From NCBI GenBank assembly GCA_000708835.1, contig DF237330.1:26261-90260 (forward strand): a stretch of DNA of 64,000 nucleotides, given 5' to 3'. This document shows, one piece after another, positions 45,790 through 57,398 of the stretch. The stretch is from Klebsormidium nitens (lineage: Eukaryota; Plantae; Klebsormidiophyceae). A model generated the notes under the pieces. That model had not been told where the DNA came from and ran no database searches. It saw nothing but the letters and a program-made list of their open reading frames with translations. Positions within the stretch are counted from its first letter, which is position 1. Each line of letters begins with the position of its first letter. The translations under genes were made by a program, and so were the position numbers.

Positions 45790-48700
45790 ATGGAAAGCCG
45801 CATCGGCACTCATGCCAGGTTGGCGAGCACGTCAGTCAAGATGCTAAGGCAGGTTGCTGTTACATATTCCCTGCTCTGTCTGACTTCTAGTGTGGATGCG
45901 TTCTTCAACGGAAGCACTGGCGTGACCAGAGGGACAAAACCTTCAACCCTTCCAGGCGAGTCTAGCGGTCGGCTGCAAGACAGTGCATTAGCTGTATGGC
46001 ATAGCAGGTGGACAGGCTGCGCTCATGTGGTTGGACCCCCCTGCTAATTTGCAGTGCATTGTGTTGTCAGCTCGGGGTTGCTTGAGACAGACTCCGAGCC
46101 AGTCACTTAATAGGGACAAAAATGACTTCCCAAAATGACTTCTCAACAGCATGCAATGCTGCAACTAGGTTGGCATCCTCTATATTGCTGTCGTGTATAT
46201 GCTTCTAGTTCTGAGTAACATGGTGCAGGAGCTCTGAATGTAAGTGAGACGACTACCAACACTTCTTGAAGGTCTTCAAGAATTGGATTGACCTTCAAGA
46301 GATTGATAAATGAATCTGGTCGAATCCACAATGAACTTGACTCTACAACCAAGTGAAAGCTACCTTCATGACAGATGTGCAAGCAGTCTTCTTTCTCACG
46401 AGAATCTGACTAAGAACGATATAGCAGTAAACCAGGTATGCACGTAGAGGGAATGAGCTCACCAAGTAAATCCAAGGTTGTATCAGAGGGAGAGATAGAC
46501 CGCATACATTCCAACATGTTCTCAAGTGGTCCAAACACAGGTCAGTGCGAGCTTTTTCCGGCGCAAGACTTCCTGGGCCACGATATCAACAACGGGTGCC
46601 GCAACCCGCAGCCGTCAGCAGCTGCGTGCTGTTCCAGCTGCGACAGCACCGCTGGGTGCGTGGCGTGGACTTGGCATGGCAGCGTCAACCCAGGCGCCTG
46701 CAACGTCTGGGGCGAGTGCTGGCTCAAGGACTCCGTCACTGTGCTCGTGCCTTCAACGGACTCCCAGGCAGTTGCTGGGAGAAGCTCTGCGGTTCCATCG
46801 ACCCAAGGTACACCAGCTCTCTCTCCTTCTCTGGTTGCAGTTGAAGATTTCAACTCATTGAGCAAAAGTAGATTCAATAAGCAGGCGCAGAAGATTTGGT
46901 CAAAGCCATGGCAGAAGCGCCGGCTATTTTGCTGGCATAACCGGAAACCCATCCAAGCCGCAATTGGAACTCTGAAACATATATAGTTGAGCATCCCTGG
47001 CTTTATGTAGTAGCTCACTCAGCGTCATCTCATAACACTCTGACAGCCACTGCACGAACGCCGACAATTCGCCGGCCGCCACACCCCCGGCCCCCGGAAT
47101 TGTGCGAAACTTTTCCAGCCAGCCGCCAGGCTGGCCCCCCCAGATTGGACTTTCAAAAATTCAGGAAATTGCACTTATTTCGAAGAATACGCCCCATTTT
47201 CGTCCTCAATCAGCGCATATTCTCTGTCCGTATCCCATAGGTATGTCAAGTCGCCTGAGTTCAGCAGAATATATTGAATATTGTCTTGGTTTTGGCTGGT
47301 GGGTCAGCCCGGGGCGCTTTACCCGGCTGCCGCCGCCGCCGCCGGACCCCCTGTTCGCTCGTCCTCCGAGCACTTCCGCCAGCCGCCGACCGCCCCCGCC
47401 GCCATTTCAATTGTCGGCATTCGTGCAGTCACTGTAAATCTGTTATGAGACCACGCTGAGCGTGCATATATGGGCTTTGGAATCGATACCATGTGTGAGG
47501 TGACACTTTGCTTGTTTCTCGACGCTGCCAAAGTCTCCTCCAATTGGAGGACATTTGAAGGTGACACTCTGGAGCGGCTGCACTTAATCAACATGGGCAT
47601 TCAAGTTGGCCTCACGTCTAGCCCTATCTTGCGGTGGCATTTTCCTCTTTGGATTGAAGTGTTGTTATCAGAGAATGTGTGCATGTTCCGTTTTTATTGG
47701 GCTCTTTTGCCTTTATTGATTAATCACACGTTTATTTGCTAGCAGTGTGGAGGCACTACATCTCTTTAGGGGCCAACTATAGATTTTGGCCGTTTTAAGG
47801 AAGAACCCAAGGCTGTTCTTTCCTCGAGAGTAAACTGCAGGTTCCAAGTCTGACTTGGTCAGTCTTCTGCCTTTCTGATAAGGCCAGATTGACCATGTAT
47901 TAAGGCTGTTTGAGTTGGCCGTAAGACTGGTCTTACTAAGTACCTTAGCATAGTGACCAAGCATTTAACAGTGGCCTTCTACAACAAGCACCAACTCCTA
48001 CCGTCGGCCAAAGTTGACTCTGGCCCGAGCCAGCCCTCTGCTCCAGTCTCGAGCTGCTAGCTCCGTTCATGCCCAACTTCTTATTCGAATTCCATCCCCC
48101 AACAGAAGAAATACCAAGACTGAACCGTGTATGTTTCAACTTCGTATGTTGTTCCAGTAACCTCGTTTTCGAGCAGGGCGGCAACTGATCAGTCCTTGCC
48201 GCACTCTCGCTGCACTCTCGTTGGATCCTTAGTAGTTCTTAAAAGCCTGCGTCAAAAACAGCCCCGTTGCCCTTCGCATCCACAGGGACTTGCGACCACT
48301 TCCCCGCACAGGACTTCGTGGGACACGACATCAACAATGGGTGCGAGAACCTGCAGCCTTCTGCATCTGCTTGCTGCGCTAGCTGCTACACAAATGACCA
48401 TTGTGTGGCGTGGTCCTGGCATGGGAGCATCAACCCATCAGCCTGTAACGTCTTTGGCGAGTGCTGGCTGAAGGACATGGTGGCTTCGCTGTCCTCCTCG
48501 AGCGACCCCCAAGCAGTGGCCGGAAAGTTGAAGAATGTGGTCATCCCAACGACTCCAAGTAAGCAGAGCCGGACGTGCTTTTCCTAGCGACTCCAAGAAA
48601 GCAGACTCAGCCAATGATTGTTGCAACACCTGCATCTAAAAAAGGGATCCTAAAGTGTATTCCCCGTGGGAGAATCTGCCTTAGTACTGAGTACCCACTA

Positions 48701-51700
48701 TGGGAGGTTCCACTGTTATATCTAGCTCGGTTAGAGGGCGTTGCAACGCGGGGCACGTTGGAACTGTGGCCCCAAACGCGTACAGTGCCTTTCGGGTCAA
48801 GAGATAGTCAATCGAAGGCCTATCAAAGTCGGCTTAAGAAAGTTCCATCTTGATTTTGTAATTGGTCGCGGCTGATTTGTGGTCCTCTTACACTCAGCCT
48901 GAACTTTTGACCTCACAAACAGGCACTAGTCTTCCAAATGTGTTTCCTACTAAGGTGGATCAGCTATGTCCAGGGGAGATTGCGCAGATAGGCTCTGAGC
49001 ATTTGATGGACCATCCACAGCAGCTTCTATCAATGTTAAGCTGATTCGTTTGAGACCCAGCGCTTTTTGACTCACTAAATCCAAGTATTTTGTAAGCTAG
49101 GTGGCATTCAACTCTAGAACCTCTGCATGCATCCGGACCCTCATTACAGAAAGACTTTTTTTAGAAGCCCTCACGATCCCGACGGCGGCATTAGACATGC
49201 CTGGGTTAGCATCGATCTCAGAGATTAAATAGAAAGTCTATTTTTTCAAGCGCACCTGAGAAGCTGACGGGAAGACATTGGCTGTTTACTTAGCTTGAAT
49301 ATCTTTGCAAGCTGTCCACCGTCGATAACACAAGGAAACTCTGCCGTGATACCAACAATATCGGTCGTTGCTTGCTTCAATTTGAATGCCCTTATACCAG
49401 ACGCTGTAAAACAAACCTCCGGTGAATTGCCCCTTTCCTCAAAGATGCCAGTGCTTCAAAGCCAATCCTCCCTTATGACAAATCTGATCAGCAATCTGCC
49501 TAATTCTGACCAATCAAAAGTTTCATAATCCTGGGATAGCGGTCTCTATCAGAGCGTAGTGATGCAGGTTAGTGTCTCAATACGCTATTATCTTAGAGAA
49601 CAAACCTTGCGTGTATGCTTTACGATCTCAACAAAGGCATGTCGACACCGTTGCGAAAATTGCTGCAATGAGGTACGGTCACTCTACAAAGCCCCTTTTA
49701 AAGGAAAAAGGGGTCTTTTGGTCTTTATTTTTTCATCAAACGGCAAGGACGTTTCTGCTCTTTCTGACACACACCTGGCTCGCGGAGGCGCGCCTTGGAA
49801 TGAAAGTGGAGGGGCGGGTACTTAAGTTCGACCATGTGTTCAACACCGCGCCGCCTCGCAGGAAACCCCGTTATCCAGTGGGCCGGACTAGCGCCAAAGC
49901 TTCCTTGTCCGCACTTGAACGTCCACCTTGTTTTGCAGTTGGCTCGTACTGCGCCGCCCAGACGCACCTGGGCTTCGATTTCTACGGCGTCGACCTCAAC
50001 AACGGTGCCCAAAACCCCCAACCCACGGCGGACGCGTGTTGCAATTCTTGCGAGTCAGACCCTTACTGCGTGGGCTGGACGTGGCATGGCGCTCGCAATC
50101 CCCAGGGCTCCAACGTGTTCGGCGAATGCTGGCTCAAAAGCAGCCTCCCCGATTATCCCCAACGGTCCAACGACCCTACGGTGGTGACTGGCAGGATGCT
50201 CCGCAGCAGTGAGCTTACATGTCCTTGCTCGTGAATTGCAGTTGATGGACAATAATCAGCAAGCATTGAAGAGTCGACTTATGACCGAAGGTCGTCGTGT
50301 GATGCGAACTCGAGAGGAACATACGATTTTCCTATCGAGGTTTACTGACGGGAGCCGGCCGGTAGAAATACATGGTCAGTGACGTCATTACAGGTATCCC
50401 GATCTTTGAGCAGCTCCAGCACGATTTCGTCTTGATTCTTCCGGTTTTACAAGTCACGAAGTCACGATGGAATCTAAAAATTATACTTTGAAGGGATCCG
50501 TCTGACTTGCATGGATTCTCCATATAGCAGAGCTTTCTCATCATTGTCGTGTTCGCGAACATAGTAGCCTCTCGCTTCAAGTTCTGAGTGTATGGTCAAA
50601 CGTTCCTGGACTCGGTTCTTGAAACACGCTTGGAAGCCAAACTCAGCAACCTATGCGCAAAGATGAGCTGTCTCGTTTGTGTGGATCGAGATTCCGATCC
50701 AAACAAATTCGTTGACGAGTGGCGAATCGAGATGGTTATTACAGCTATCTCCCCCGTGACCAACATGACAATAGATATTTGCTACGGGCTTCCGTTTTTA
50801 CACAAATGTGCATGCTCGGAAACCTAGCTAGATTAAAACTGCATTCCGAAAATTTGAGGAAGTTAAAGCTTGGATCACGCCATTCACTTTATGCCCTCAC
50901 GCGTTTGAGAACAGTGTCCCACTGGCAATCTCCAACAAATGTCCTGTTTCTGTGCAGTCTGCGATGGCATTACCCCGAACAAATGTTACGATGCGGATAA
51001 CGTCGGCTTCACTTGTTGCCCCGGACGGTGCTCAGCACAGACTTCTCCCGTGGCCCTCTGTGATTACGGCGACGAAAAGCCATGTAAGTGAGCGGCGTAG
51101 ATTGTTTATATATAATAATTCTCGTGAGTTCGAGACTGTGACTCGGAGGCCTGAAACTCATGAAACTCAGGTTACTTCTCGTAGTCACAAGCCCTTTCCG
51201 TCCACACCCGTGTTTGCCAAGTTTTTGAAAGAGCAGCCTGAGGTAGCTTGAAATACATTTGCGCTTAATGGCGATGATGCGCATTTTAAGGATATCCATC
51301 AGACCAGAAGTTCTTAGAAGCTTTAATCTTCACGCTAACAACACGTCGATCCTGTACTAGCTGTTTCTAAGACGGTTCTGGTCACTTTGTGTTCATTGAG
51401 TTCGATATATGAGTGTAGGGGCGTGCCCTGCGATTGAGCACGGTGATCGTAGAAGCGATTCGTGACGATTTTCGACCATACTGTATGCGTTACTGTCCAC
51501 TTTTTAGCTAGCCTATTGCAGGACAGCATGATAAGCCGTGCAGTACCCGCGCGAAATAGGTTTTCCTTGTCTTCCCTTTGCAGCCAATGACAGTCTCATC
51601 GAGGTGGAATTTATTACGACCATAGAGGGCTACGCCTTCTCAGAGCTCACCCAAAAGATGATAGATGCATACATCACCGCATTCTCGTCTCAAGGAGACG

Positions 51701-54700
51701 TGATGGAGGTATCGCCACAATATTCGTCCTTTGACAAGCTGACTTTATGTTTGAATCAAGGAAGCAAACCTCGAAGACCCATGAGCAATACATCGATTGA
51801 AGGATGACCGACTCAACCTGGTCCAGTTTGAAGTGGCCTATATTTCTATCAGAATCACTGGCAGACCTTATAAGCCTGAGAAACGGTTGCAAATTCCTTC
51901 GGTTTGTTTGCATGCGATGTGAAGTATAACATTGTGTACAGGAAAATTTGAGGGTCCTTGTTCCGTCAGGGCTGCGTTTGCAACCATGGATCGACGTCGT
52001 CGTTATTCATAGAAGTCTCTGCCGAGCATGGTTGCTGTTAATCTGACTGCCCGCCAATCTACCAGCTAGACAGATCAAGTGGATTCCGATTAGATTTTTG
52101 GAATTGTGATCGTCAAGCTTAGAGTGCCCAGCTCGATTGCATACAGCTGTGCTCCTGCATTAAGAACCGCGCAGCAGAAGTAGTCAAGGACTGTAATGGC
52201 AACATCATGAGTCCCTTGAACCCCAGTCAAGCGCCTTAAGATATTGATGTTGATGAAGCTGCTTTACTTCACCGAATTTTGGTACTCTAATGCAGGTGGC
52301 GGTTATCGATATCACTGAAGGAAGTTTCCGATTCAGGACAAGGATTCGGATATTTTCGAGAGGTGTGGGTGCCGTATTTCGAGGAGCTAAGAAGCTCATC
52401 GAGGGAACCTTCCGGGCCGGGATAAATATCATTTTTAGTGTGTTCCAGGTGCTAAATCCAGGAATAGCCCCATCACGTGAGTCTTTGAATTTTACGTGCT
52501 TAGTCTGGACACGGTTCTTGTGCTTCGTTCTTGTGGCTGTTCAGATCTTCGTCAACATGTCAAAGTTGCTTGTATAAGGTTTGAAGACGTAATAATCATG
52601 CGTAGATAGCATCCACCTATAACCAACTAGGTTTCTATGTATGCTCTCTGCTGGCCCCTTAAAACTGTTTGGTCACGGTTTTGCCACGCAGTGGGCCCCA
52701 CGTGGCCAGCTTTCAGCAAGATGAAACCAGGTCTGATGATTCTGCATGAATGATTCTGTGGATTCTGTTTCAGCGCTCTGAACTCCGCGATGTACTTGCA
52801 GCAATTTGCGAAGAGGAATGCCCCTACCGCAACCGACAAGGAGATCTTGTCTGCAAGAATATGTGTACGGGTGGCGGGCAATTGTGTCCCACATATCCGG
52901 CAGATCCAAACGGCTGCGGCACGAGCACTGGTAAGCTACTGGGTTCATTGTTTCCATGCTGCAACAGTTAAGATTTTAGGGTACGCAGAGATTGCAAGGT
53001 TCTTTAGGATTCAACAAGACGGTCAACCTTCAAGCTAGGCGTCCCGACAACGACTTTTGTCGACTCTGCTTTAAAAGCCACAAGCGGTTCAATCGTAGTA
53101 TAAGGTGGACGTCCCAGGCCGGCCCAAGCTAGGTCGTTCTTGCTTCCCTCGTGGTGGTACGTAGATACGTACCGGCCAGAATATCAGCAGTATCGCCGAG
53201 CGGCTTGCTTTTCCATCGAACTTATTTAGTTTCGCAGGTTAACACCGTGACACAAGTTCATCCACGATATTGCTTAGTATCTCCATATTGCTTTCGCATT
53301 TTTTACCACTTCATTTCCTTCAACATTGCGTCCCGTTCAATTTTTGATTGTGGAATCAACTTGCAACTCGGAAAGCAGGGCTCGAGCTTACGTATTTACT
53401 TGACCTGTTCACCTTGGTTAGATAAGAACGTGCACTGTCACTTCGCACCTGGATTCAATCGTCCAAACCAGGCTGTAGTAGGTGGGATGAGTTCTTTCGG
53501 TGAGGGGAGCCTCAATAAAATTAGCGGGTCAAAAAGTTTGGATCGAAAGATAAGGGGCAATCCTAGAACTCGGATATTGATCTCAGGATTCCATGGATCT
53601 TCGTACGGTTACTTGGAACTGTAGATCCACGGGTTTTGAAATCTTCAAACTTGTCTCCAAATTCCAGCAAATTCAAGTTGTGACGCATAGGGCGCCTTGG
53701 CGAACCGGAGGCAAACAGGGGCAGAACCGGAGCATTCCGCTCCGGAAAAATGGCGGACGAACCGGAGCTGGGCCCCGGTTTGAGGCCGGTTCGGAGTGAA
53801 CAGGAACCGGTTCTTGCAAATCGGAGCCGATTCTCAGAACCGGTTCCTATTCTTCGCAAACCGGCCTCAAACCAGAGCCTAGCTCCGGTTCGTCCGCCAC
53901 TTCTCCGGAGCGGAATGCTCCGGTTCGGCCCCGGTTCAGCTCCTGTTTGCAGCCAAAGCTCCCAGGCTGTGCCGAGCTCGATCAGACTCATTAAGCTAGC
54001 TCACGATGAATAGGACCTAGACGACCGATGACTCAAACTCGATAGCGACGACGTTGACTCTAGTAATCTCCTCCGGCCCGCCTTCAATCCGCGTAGTATT
54101 GTCTTTGTCTGACATTGGCACGTGGTTTGCAGGGATTGGACCTATCGTCCAACCAATAGTCGATTTTGTGGCAGCAAATAGTGGTCAATATGCCAGCTCC
54201 TACTTTCAAAACGCATGTGATCATCATGATATATGTTACGGGTCGCCAGGGAAGAGCCAAGAAAACTGCGATCGCGAGTTGCAGTTGCGCTTTCAAGGTG
54301 CTTGTGCCGAAGCGTATCCAATATCTTCTTTGCCACTTTTCATCACTAATGGATACTTTCGCACCAAATGCCTGGGCATCGCAGTTATCATGGCGACTAG
54401 TTTGAGGTAAGCGATAGTTACTTTTCGTGCCCAACTAAGCTCTTTGATGCTCAGATCTACTAGACAGGAATGTGACGTCCGGTGAACGGCCTAGCTTAGG
54501 GCCGTCTCTTAAGTTCACCTGTAATTGAATGATCACTCATTGGTTAAATAGAGCCTTATCAGTGATACGGCCTACTTTCTGAAAGAGAAGTTTCATTACG
54601 AATCGGAAGAATCATTGAATCGAAAATCAGGCAGTGTACCGCAAGGGCTCTGCGAATCTGTGTTGAAATTGTTCAATCTTGCAGGATTGGTGGCACTTCT

Positions 54701-55610
54701 GCACACAGTAATGGACAAGATCTCACAAAGACTTTCTACACTTCCCAGTAAGTCCATTATTTATGCAATCTGATTCATGCAGAACGTTTTCCTTTGCCTC
54801 TGGCCTGGTAGCCTCGCGGTGTCGTAGGCCGGGAGCATATTACACCATGGTGTAGTATAGTAGCTCTTCATCTGGTAATGATACATAAGAGACGTCTTTA
54901 ATGCCGATGATGGGTAGATTTAATCATGTCGTTTGTATATGCTAAACGATTTTGATAAGCAATATGCATGTCTCAGACCAATGACGTGATTGACGTGATT
55001 TACACGAGTTACTGATCCGTGCAAGTGCCAGACTATATTGCAGGAACCTTGGCCTGGATGTGGAACGGCTTAATTAAGAACATTCTAGGACTTGAAGGTC
55101 TTCATAAATCGAAACTCTCAATGGCACTTTTAGCGGCCTCAATTGGACTTCCCACACTTTATCTTTTTGAAATCTAATGATGCTTGTTGTACGGATACCC
55201 GAATCGCTAACATTATATCTCTCCTTGTATTCTTTTCTAGTTGCACAGCACCAACAAGCCCACGCGTCTGCTTTGGTGCCGAGGTCGAAAAAGGGGTAGC
55301 AATTCTTGAATTTCGCCCCGATTTCATTCGTACCAATGCTACATCAGAGTGCCCTGGGGACTCTTATGTGTGTATTGATACCTATCAGTCGGCCACAAGG
55401 TTTGACGGTTTAGAAGCTGCATCGGATGAAAGGTACAACGGCACCCTTTACGAGTTCTACTCACCGGCGTTCGTTGGGCTTACCAACAGATTCGTCGGGA
55501 TCTTTGCCGGTAGACTTGGCCTGATCTGCAACAACATCACTACTCCGCAGCCATATGGAGCTCAAGTCAAGGCAATATTCTGTCAGTGTTTGGGGATCGG
55601 GCCTTCTTGA
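45790..55610 (+). CDS. Secreted multidomain protein: signal peptide, 3x PAN/Apple, Cys-rich module, SEA-like segment, secretory phospholipase A2 (His-Asp), unknown C-terminal domain; 11 exons, ~747 aa
   Basis: Exons 45790-45955 (GC donor), 46541-46807, 48286-48558, 49939-50208, 50958-51083, 51584-51708, 52296-52448, 52774-52930, 54133-54406, 54685-54747, 55241-55610 join in phase without stops (2244 nt). Hydrophobic leader VAVTYSLLCLTSSVDA. Three DFxGxDINNG..CCxxC..CVxWxW..CWLK PAN-type repeats. PLA2 motifs PNGCG, NACDHHDICY, NCDREL. Confidence 0.85.
47044..47434. mobile_element. ~391 bp MITE with 26 bp TIRs (Tc1/mariner-pogo-like ends) in intron 2 of the PAN-PLA2 gene
   Basis: Left cagccactgcacgaacgccgacaatt (47044-47069) versus reverse complement of 47409-47434, cagtgactgcacgaatgccgacaatt (23/26). 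TA follows the right end and GA precedes the left. The interior is non-coding and GC-rich. Confidence 0.75.
53711..53950. repeat. ~240 bp foldback (long inverted repeat) rich in GAACCGG motifs, in intron 8 of the PAN-PLA2 gene
   Basis: Left arm gaaccggagcattccgctccgga..tggcggacgaaccggagct..ggtttgaggccggtt..aggaaccggttct..aatcgg pairs with right arm ccgatt..agaaccggttcct..aaccggcctcaaacc..agctccggttcgtccgcca..tccggagcggaatgctccggttc. The centre is at ~53825. Confidence 0.88.
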
Positions 55611-57398
55611 AAATTGCAACAACTGCATGTGGACACGTGGACAAGTGAACTTTCAACAATTTCCGTTGGATTTGTCGTAGGCTCTCGGATGTCTAGGGCT
55701 GGGTTAAAGGTTCGAACTGTAACGTCTATAGCCTCGCACTGACTCAGCCTCCAGTCCAACCCTCTTATGCGCCGGGCAGTGTGTCCAAGTCGGTGTCAGG
55801 GTGGAGTGGAGCCAGTGGAGAACATTGGAACCGTTCAAGATGGCCTAGGGTGCTGAATCGAGCAGTGTACATAGTATTCTATGTGGGCTGTACATATTTG
55901 TTACTGGTGCATACATGTAGACTCTATGCTTTCAATGTTTTCACGTGGAGACCGACTCGGACGTCGGAAACAATGATTAGCATTGCGGGTTAAAGTCCAC
56001 GTGCATGGAGAGAAGGAGGAGGAGGCACGAGCCTCGGAGAACGTCGGAGAAAGAAACTTTGAGTAATGTACGTTAGGGCTGCATTGTAGTTCGAAGAATA
56101 GGTATTGGAAAACTAAGCCTAAAAGTATGTATGTCCAGAGATTCCATTTTTGTTTGAATCTCTTGAAAGTTGAGCAGGAAGTAGAAAGGTAGGAAAGACT
56201 TGGACATGAGAATATCCCCTTGCAAATGCAAAGGTAGATCCAAACGAGCTGCCTTGCGCCTTTTTTCTGATCGTTCACTGATTACGGTGCCGACGTGATC
56301 GTCGCACTGGCAAACGTACCGTTGCCAGCTGCTCGCTTGATGTCACGTCTTGAAGTCCGAAGCAGTTCAAAACTTAACATCTGCATTGCTAGATTGAATG
56401 AAAAGTTGCATCCGACACAAAGCGCGCCGAGCTGATCAAATCAATTTAAGTTACATAGAAGTCGGGCCGCATTGGGCGGCCCGGCCATGCACGGGCAGGC
56501 CGGCCCGATCATGCAACCGGACTCGAAATACTTGATCGCCAGCGGTTCTAGGGCAAGTGATCGTCGATCGAGTTATGGCCATAGACGGTCGATCGCAATT
56601 GTCTCAGTATAATCTCGATTGAGTTTATCTATTGGCCAACTGTGTAACGTCGGACATGCAAATCGTATAGGCGGTCACTCCGTGCACTTGACGTACGCAT
56701 TACTTAGTAGCTAGAAGGTATAAATGTATTCAAGAGTAACTTCGGTTTCAATCAGCTCATGCTATACGTTTGCCAGGCACGGGCCAGATGTTGGCCGATC
56801 ATCGATCAGCGCAACACGCGCCGTTAGTACCGTCCGTCCGATCGCTGTCACTATCATTGCACCACTACCGTACGTACTCCGTGTATCATTGATGGTGTCG
56901 GATTCACATTGGGTGACTCACATCTGCAAAGGTACGGTATCGTCGTATTTGTTTGCGTCAGATCAAGACTGAGATTCATAATACCCCAGTTTGCGGAGAA
57001 AATACACTGTTGCGGTACGTGCGGGACTCTGCGACCTGGGGGCTAGCCGCACGCACAGTCCTCTATTCTGTGTCCGAGTTCGGATGAGTCCGACTCAGCG
57101 ATTGTTTGATTATCCTAGACGTCACTCCCCATCCATATACTAGAAAAGTACACGAAGCGTGCTAGTGCACAACATTCAACCCTGTCAAGCTCGCTTAATG
57201 AAGGATTCACGGCAAATACACTTCTTATTGCATGTGCCCTCCTCTACCCCCTAGCTGCCCCAAGTTCTCTTCCGGTTGGTGACTCAAGTGACCCTATCGA
57301 ATCCCTATATAAAATACCCACCACGTGCATGCCACTACCATCTTCCGTTTCAGGCTACCGGGGAAGCTTTGCTGAGAAGAACCAGCAGACTTGAGGCG

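Follow-up and report, generated by a model that had tools for sequence, protein, structure and literature searches.

The stretch of DNA analysed here (the window) comprises 64,000 nucleotides of contig DF237330.1 from the streptophyte alga Klebsormidium nitens (GenBank assembly GCA_000708835.1, positions 26,261 to 90,260 of the forward strand). Between positions 45790 and 55610 of the window, in a region of eukaryotic character with many introns and a G+C content of ~50%, lies a gene whose 11 exons would encode an extracellular protein with three PAN/Apple domains at one end and a phospholipase A2 (PLA2) domain towards the other; we refer to it as the PAN-PLA2 gene. A preliminary description of the locus had proposed that 11 exons splice in phase into a protein of ~747 amino acids, and reconstruction by hand and by script matches this exactly: the exons add up to 2244 nt in phase, that is 747 codons and a terminal TGA, with no internal stops. 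All of the acceptors are AG and all of the donors GT, except for the GC donor of intron 1. The exons, in window positions, are as follows.

45790-45955, + strand: exon 1, start codon and signal-peptide-like hydrophobic stretch ending ...SSVDA (from open reading frame and phase arithmetic)
46541-46807, + strand: exon 2, PAN/Apple domain 1, phase 1-1 (Pfam PAN_4)
48286-48558, + strand: exon 3, PAN/Apple domain 2, phase 1-1 (Pfam PAN_4)
49939-50208, + strand: exon 4, PAN/Apple domain 3, phase 1-1 (Pfam PAN_4, RNA junctions)
50958-51083, + strand: exon 5, module with six cysteines (6-Cys module), RNA junctions at both ends
51584-51708, + strand: exon 6, first half of the middle ('SEA-like') module, RNA junctions 51083 to 51584 and 51708 to 52296
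52296-52448, + strand: exon 7, second half of the middle module, containing ...ITEGSFRFRTRIRIF; donor inferred
52774-52930, + strand: exon 8, Cys-rich lead-in (CEEECPY...C...C...CPTYP) with an NGCGTSTG end, the loop before the putative catalytic helix
54133-54406, + strand: exon 9, putative PLA2 catalytic core (C-D-H-H-D-I-C-Y helix, C-D helix, third helix)
54685-54747, + strand: exon 10, end of the PLA2 domain (R-IGGTSAHSNGQ...), consensus acceptor and GTAAGT donor
55241-55610, + strand: exon 11, orphan C-terminal region of 122 amino acids and the stop TGA, with seven Cys and three N-x-S/T sites

Exon 1 contains a second in-frame ATG at 45841, and reading from this second methionine the N-terminus is MLRQVAVTYSLLCLTSSVDA, a putative signal peptide whose cleavage point, judged by eye, would fall just before FF. 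The strings VAVIDITEGSFRFRTRIRIF and ACDHHDICY both occur in the sequence. The three PAN/Apple repeats of the preliminary description are clearly present. Exons 2, 3 and 4 score 40.1, 42.1 and 43.1 bits, respectively, against PAN_4 (PF14295), for which the Pfam cutoff is 27 (E-values 3.9e-10, 9.1e-11 and 4.3e-11), with the matches covering model positions 1-51 of 51. The three share 51-65% identity with one another (65% for PAN1 and PAN2), and their common 1-1 phase is the pattern expected for shuffled or duplicated modules. In an alignment, PAN1 and PAN2 have all Cys positions of the disulfide framework in common. PAN3 (49939-50208) is without both cysteines of one pair, NNGC having become NNGA and the C before NV(W/F)GECWLK having become S, with the other cysteines kept; this looks like the paired loss of one disulfide. 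Within intron 2, around 47300-47400, there is a G+C-rich, CCG-repeat-like stretch whose reading frames are proline and arginine runs on both strands, and which is probably low-complexity or repeat DNA and non-coding. Reading frames of ~150 codons are also found within introns elsewhere in the gene region.

Exon 5 encodes the Cys-rich module that the preliminary description placed behind the PAN array. Its spacing, C-x8-C-x9-CC-x3-C-x9-C, recurs as two tandem copies (z 9 against shuffles) in the K. nitens paralogue KFL_000760015 (P0019 in our relative set), an uncharacterised hypothetical protein encoded on contig DF237025.1 of the same assembly (GCA_000708835.1). The 6-Cys module matches nothing in Pfam or the Protein Data Bank (PDB) and is not present in the loci of the other relatives fetched.

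The identity of the middle module, split between exons 6 and 7, is less clear. It had been described as SEA-like, yet neither exon searched singly gives a Pfam match to SEA (PF01390) at E-values up to 10, and nor does the corresponding middle domain of KFL_000760015 (residues 120-255); local alignment finds no significant similarity between exons 6 and 7 and that domain. What remains of the label comes from structure prediction. In its ESM-Atlas model, the middle domain of the paralogue lies nearest to SEA-bearing clusters, with TM scores of 0.60 and 0.58 over ~105 residues; the whole-protein model is of modest quality (pLDDT 0.53), and an AcrB fragment is also close to the domain (TM 0.54). 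In addition, a strand motif of G-S-hydrophobic type occurs in both proteins, as EGSFRF in exon 7 and as SGSIIA in KFL_000760015, and these motifs resemble the SEA cleavage site, GSVVV, cut between G and S and located between strands 2 and 3. The position of the module would be apt, as in animal mucins and adhesion GPCRs the SEA module likewise lies between an extracellular binding array and the remainder of the protein. The name is thus a lead only, drawn from the predicted structure of the paralogue and not of the PAN-PLA2 protein itself, and the module may instead be a generic ferredoxin-like sandwich.

The third part of the protein, the PLA2 domain, appears to be divided over exons 8-10. 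With exon 9 as the query, an exhaustive HMMER search across 1.84 billion representative proteins returned 31 relatives at E<1e-3, most of which carry Pfam PLA2G12 and/or Phospholip_A2_3 and several of which exceed the Pfam cutoff. The family pattern consists of an NGCG loop, followed ~25 residues later by F-x2-A-C-x2-H-D-x-C-Y-G-T-x-G-x-S-x3-C-D, a third helix and a GGxAYxxAQ block. When a profile built from homologues alone, containing no sequence from the window, was run against the six-frame translation of the window, the exon 9 reading frame scored 76 bits (E 5.5e-22). All eight of the columns that are invariant among 30 family members are retained in exon 9 (C28, H31, D32, C34, Y35, C45, D46 and C57), so that the claim of an intact His-Asp motif holds.

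Exon 9 is intelligible only as a spliced continuation of exon 8, since the NGCG motif lies at the end of exon 8, exon 9 has neither an ATG nor a signal peptide of its own, and the phase fits. The PNGCGTSTG end of exon 8 lines up with the family's NGCG motif, a putative calcium loop region; a profile search of the window found no other NGCG-type piece. Exon 8 as a whole resembles KFL_000760015 (z 10) and a metagenomic relative, P0015 (41% identity over 49 amino acids). In the frame set by exon 9, exon 10 contributes R-IGGTSAHSNGQ, which aligns with the GGxAYxxAQ block; alone this match is weak, with an E-value of ~15 window-wide and a p-value of roughly 0.04 given its place, strand and frame. 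Without use of its GTAAGT donor, the frame of exon 10 would stop immediately at TAA 54749-54751.

As judged from profile comparison, the exon 9 domain belongs to the group XII/XIV (bacterial/fungal) branch of secreted PLA2s (sPLA2s), not to plant group XI, because the family profile, with exon 9 included, matches solved PLA2 structures: 4AUP from Tuber borchii (1.7e-7), 1FAZ/1LWB from Streptomyces (1.4e-6), 7YGK (3e-4) and 8K1W. The best Pfam match of exon 9 alone is likewise PLA2G12 (PF06951; E 3.9e-4), spanning the HD and C-D helices, and at E-values up to 10 the exons match no other PLA2 family in Pfam. Searched as a 118-amino-acid reading frame, exon 9 found no relative of 65-206 amino acids, and as a single sequence it found no relative in the PDB. 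An AF2 model of exon 9 made with the family alignment, and thus of a partial domain, has four helices and a pLDDT of 81.

The relatives help to place this domain in its context. KFL_000760015 has the order signal peptide, two 6-Cys modules, middle domain of ~125 amino acids, Cys-rich lead-in and PLA2 core, and local alignment against shuffles relates exons 5, 8 and 9 to it with z scores of 9, 10 and 19, the similarity of exons 10 and 11 not being significant. In both K. nitens proteins a putative alpha/beta middle domain is followed by CPY...C...CP-x-(F/Y)P-x-DPNGCG and then by a C-D-x-HDICYG(T/S)PG helix, and in both genes the NGCG and HD parts lie on different exons with an intron between them; KFL_000760015, unlike the PAN-PLA2 gene, has no PAN domains and no tail resembling exon 11. 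In P0015, from a eukaryote-like metagenomic contig, parts resembling exons 8, 9 and 10 lie in a single uninterrupted reading frame (L002 1292-2377, a Logan contig of SRR21860266), so that the PLA2 domain is complete and is preceded by the same Cys-rich lead-in. Reading frames upstream of P0015 (...INFTVYMTDYDIVSFGQPQQATFIQMIQ... and ...SMRFQTYNT...) are patterned like the middle module of the PAN-PLA2 gene, and the pairing of middle module and PLA2 may therefore extend beyond the K. nitens genome.

A profile search found no PAN domain in the loci of the PLA2 relatives, KFL_000760015 included. Since KFL_000760015 shares the core and PAN is absent from it and from the loci of the other relatives, the stretch from Cys module through middle module to PLA2 is, on present comparison, the older part of the PAN-PLA2 gene, to which the PAN array is an N-terminal addition particular to that gene. 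The preliminary description had not recognised the architecture from land plants; the combination of PAN and PLA2 occurs neither among the 31 detectable relatives nor in their loci. A literature search found no report of PAN with PLA2 in algae, and a search for RHS with PLA2G12 returned general Rhs papers alone.

Public annotation of both K. nitens genes merits comment. The highest identity found in the exon 9 search is no more than 47%, though the library contains K. nitens proteins (P0019), and because no match exceeds this value the public annotation probably lacks any protein containing exon 9. The public model of KFL_000760015 (L001, DF237025.1, 12622-12843) ends ...ACLELPDDLASIDLSL and a stop just past the C-D helix, with the last PLA2 helix missing, and the next called gene (L001 12880-14328) begins 37 bp after it; the model may be cut short, read into an intron or represent a split gene. 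A search with P0019 as the query returned P0019 alone.

The splicing of the gene can be followed in part in RNA. We compared positions 49900-55700 with assembled contigs from four RNA-like runs of the same organism, at 100% identity and a depth of 2-4; contigs of such low depth lose rare forms and cannot show that a form is absent. Four of the 10 junctions are seen (e3-e4, e4-e5, e5-e6 and e6-e7). For e3-e4, contigs joining at 49939 carry a loose end that reads the last 30 or more bases of exon 3. The junction 50208 to 50958 (e4-e5) is present in three runs (X1, X2 and X3), and the junctions 51083 to 51584 (e5-e6) and 51708 to 52296 (e6-e7) are each present in two. In exon 7, contig coverage spans 52294-52435. 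The remaining six junctions, from e7-e8 to e10-e11 together with those upstream of e3, are without RNA support, those from e7-e8 onwards having been sought in the contigs of all four runs.

These junctions bear directly on whether the locus holds one gene or two. If intron 4 is retained, an in-frame TGA (50232-50234) follows PAN3, and the preliminary description had pointed to transcripts ending there as the sign of a PAN gene separate from a downstream PLA2 gene. In the three runs with the e4-e5 junction this TGA is skipped; the RNA junctions from e3 to e7 show that it is spliced out and that one RNA carries PAN2 and PAN3 together with exons 5-7. A gene ending at TGA 50232 was rejected on this basis. 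For PAN to exon 7 the two-gene reading is refuted by RNA, and for the remainder homology makes it unlikely: exons 5, 8 and 9 are colinear in a single paralogous protein, and exon 9 would have to begin a gene with no start codon or signal peptide. One gene, not two, is indicated because RNA junctions cross TGA 50232, KFL_000760015 is colinear and P0015 has the exon 8-10 parts in one reading frame, and we regard two genes as very improbable.

Whether the usual product of this one gene reaches the PLA2 domain is a harder question, and several observations weigh against the full-length protein. The sole RNA contig on exon 8 (52802-53041) follows the genome past the donor at 52930 and runs unspliced for 110 nt into intron 8, at a depth similar to that of the spliced exons; read through, it ends at TAA 52969-52971 (the 526th codon), upstream of the catalytic His. 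On 53042-55700, which takes in exons 9-11, there is no contig in any of the four runs, each of which partly covers e4-e8, and the RNA contigs examined give no evidence for PLA2 exons in mature mRNA. GC3 declines from 5' to 3', from 0.70-0.79 in the PAN exons through ~0.6 in exons 5-6 and 0.5 in exons 7-8 to 0.43, 0.35 and 0.51 in exons 9, 10 and 11. Intron 1 requires a GC donor at 45956, the other options at the end of exon 1 being two weaker GT donors, after 45967 and 45982, which would give 751 or 756 amino acids. Exon 11 finds no match in Pfam (E up to 10), in an Atlas feature search or among homologous proteins. On the enzyme itself, exon 9 alone scores 20.9 bits against PLA2G12, below the cutoff of 34; the top row of a Foldseek search with its partial-domain model is 4AUP, with an E-value of 1.1 and TM scores of 0.40-0.51, which is not significant; and a VIA wide search with the same model finds generic helical bundles with Z up to 6.4, again not significant.

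The first of these observations would fit a gene that is real but whose usual product is truncated, with intron 8 retained or the transcript ending inside it. Such a product, of 525 amino acids and without the catalytic His, would consist of the three PAN domains, the Cys module, the middle module and a Cys-rich stub, with exons 9-11 rarely used or a recently stranded remnant. The lower GC3 of e9-e11 and the inverted repeat with arms of 115 nt within intron 8 would fit this too. Against it, exon 9 retains every invariant family residue and its 76-bit score, exons 9, 10 and 11 are open, in phase and bounded by consensus splice sites, RNA libraries commonly contain unspliced pre-mRNA, and contig coverage of 2-4x drops rare forms. 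We consider truncation, the main alternative, rather unlikely.

The repeat in question is MITE-like (resembling a miniature inverted-repeat transposable element) and occupies 53694-53967, with arms at 53700-53814 and 53836-53950 that are 84% complementary across a spacer of 21 nt; the intron that bears it is the one left unspliced in the RNA contig. The same contig starts exactly at 52802, which is an alternative acceptor position. At the border of exons 7 and 8, the donor at 52448 (GTGCTA) with the acceptor at 52774 keeps the frame open, as does the stronger donor at 52476 (GTGAGT) with the acceptor at 52802, and the total length is the same in either case. As regards the further Cys-containing domain proposed for the C-terminus, its seven cysteines, its phase and its 122 open codons stand, whilst no relatives were found for it. 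In frame 0 its codon log-odds are mildly better than those of other frames or of intron reading frames, tblastn against the loci of the homologues was negative and a single-sequence AF2 model has a pLDDT of 37.

A second alternative accepts the full-length protein and questions its chemistry. The PLA2-like domain may not be a lipase at all, serving instead as a lipid- or ligand-binding or structural module in a wall or mucilage protein. PAN, Cys and SEA-like modules are typical of matrix and adhesion proteins, and the domain is divergent and falls below Pfam cutoffs, as does even the complete domain of P0015 (14 bits). Inactive PLA2-like proteins usually lack the His or the calcium ligands, however, and here His-Asp, Tyr, the second Asp and the Cys framework are intact and the NGCG loop is present. 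A non-catalytic role therefore seems improbable to us.

Comparison with known systems shows how far the domain and its setting depart from precedent. Several of the relatives exceed the 34-bit cutoff of PLA2G12 (P0007 at 57.8, P0022 at 37.4, P0006 at 37.3 and P0030 at 36.4 bits), whereas the paralogue (P0019:250-362, 16.6 bits) and P0015 (14.3 bits) fall below it. Animal PLA2G12 proteins are single-domain and of ~190 amino acids, unlike the 747-amino-acid mosaic described here. Group XIV enzymes (Phospholip_A2_3; 4AUP and, from Streptomyces violaceoruber, 1FAZ/1LWB) resemble the predicted exon 9 domain in being small, helical and of the Ca2+ type, and share with it C-x2-HD-x-x-Y and an Asp further on, in the following helix, but they are single-domain proteins of ~120 amino acids with an HDFGY motif, whereas exon 9 has HDICYG followed by (T/S)PGxS, extra Cys and a place within a mosaic. 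A comparable general plan is seen in bacterial RHS/YD-repeat and other secreted proteins, the metagenomic P0011 and P0030 and the VWD-linked P0006, in which a PLA2G12-like module is C-terminal to, or embedded in, a large delivery or adhesion scaffold; the RHS/YD proteins differ from the algal gene in their shell-based delivery and in having no PAN, 6-Cys or SEA-like modules.

Plant sPLA2 and PLA2-like proteins of group XI (PA2c) have 90-191 amino acids, a YGKYCGxxxxGC loop and a CCxxHDxCY motif, and a survey of plant PLA2s reports a single sPLA2 in streptophyte algae (PMC9995887). The PAN-PLA2 gene shares with group XI its green-lineage setting, the HD dyad and the character, predicted here, of a secreted Ca2+-dependent PLA2. 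Neither of the two group XI motifs is present in exons 8 and 9, which instead have NGCG and one Cys before HD, and a PA2c search would miss the gene.

Beyond the algae, 48 bacterial genomes carry the motif C[DN]xHD[IAD]CY[GS][TS], and these belong to Planctomycetota, Verrucomicrobiota, Chloroflexota, Actinomycetota and Myxococcota, among other phyla. A tree of 78 PLA2 cores is poorly resolved: five eukaryote-like metagenomic sequences form one clade, with exon 9 and the paralogue placed as long branches within the same 17-row group. As this tree neither shows nor excludes a single origin, we make no claim of gene transfer. In the tree, the PLA2 core of a Clostridia metagenome-assembled genome contig from roe deer caecum (L016, JAFTHW010000034.1) pairs with the K. 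nitens paralogue with an SH-aLRT of 87, which could be long-branch noise or a misbinned contig.

Taking this evidence as a whole, we favour, with a probability of about 0.55, a single gene whose product is an extracellular mosaic of three PAN domains, a Cys module, a possibly SEA-like module and a PLA2 of group XII/XIV type, acting as a surface-targeted phospholipase. The architecture put forward in the preliminary description holds in large part; it is probably new, built around a known type of enzyme. The predicted order is a signal-peptide-like start, three PAN_4 domains, the 6-Cys module, an alpha/beta middle module, the Cys-rich lead-in, a Ca2+-type sPLA2 divided over exons 8-10, and an orphan tail of 122 amino acids. 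The PAN modules would anchor the protein to a surface of glycan or protein, whether on a foreign cell or on the wall or mucilage of the alga itself, where the PLA2 would cleave sn-2 acyl chains from nearby membrane phospholipids, in defence against microbes or grazers or in lipid scavenging. Secretion, the joining of exons 7 to 11, catalytic activity, surface targeting and the biological role are inferences. Some indirect support for the membrane-attacking enzyme proposed in the preliminary description comes from bacterial members of the PLA2 family, which are found at the C-termini of RHS/YD-type proteins.

A bolder version of the surface-targeted phospholipase, to which we would give little credence at present, sees a small Klebsormidium family of secreted proteins in which a PLA2 toxin domain of bacterial type, perhaps gained by gene transfer, sits behind a self-cleaving SEA-like module. 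Exon shuffling would have placed this unit behind a three-PAN lectin anchor, so that the lipase is parked on a wall or target and released or activated there, as a eukaryotic counterpart of the bacterial polymorphic toxins.

For the annotation of K. nitens, the public gene model of the PAN-PLA2 locus may need correction, exon 9 being probably missing from it. Production of the full-length protein would mean that an early land-adapted streptophyte alga assembles extracellular enzymes through the shuffling of phase-1 PAN exons onto an older unit of Cys module, SEA-like module and PLA2. The green lineage would then have a second sPLA2 family, of bacterial/fungal type, that is invisible to PA2c-based surveys of plant PLA2s, and the gene would become a tangible candidate for a role in the interactions of algae with microbes, through surface-targeted attack on lipids or through their scavenging.

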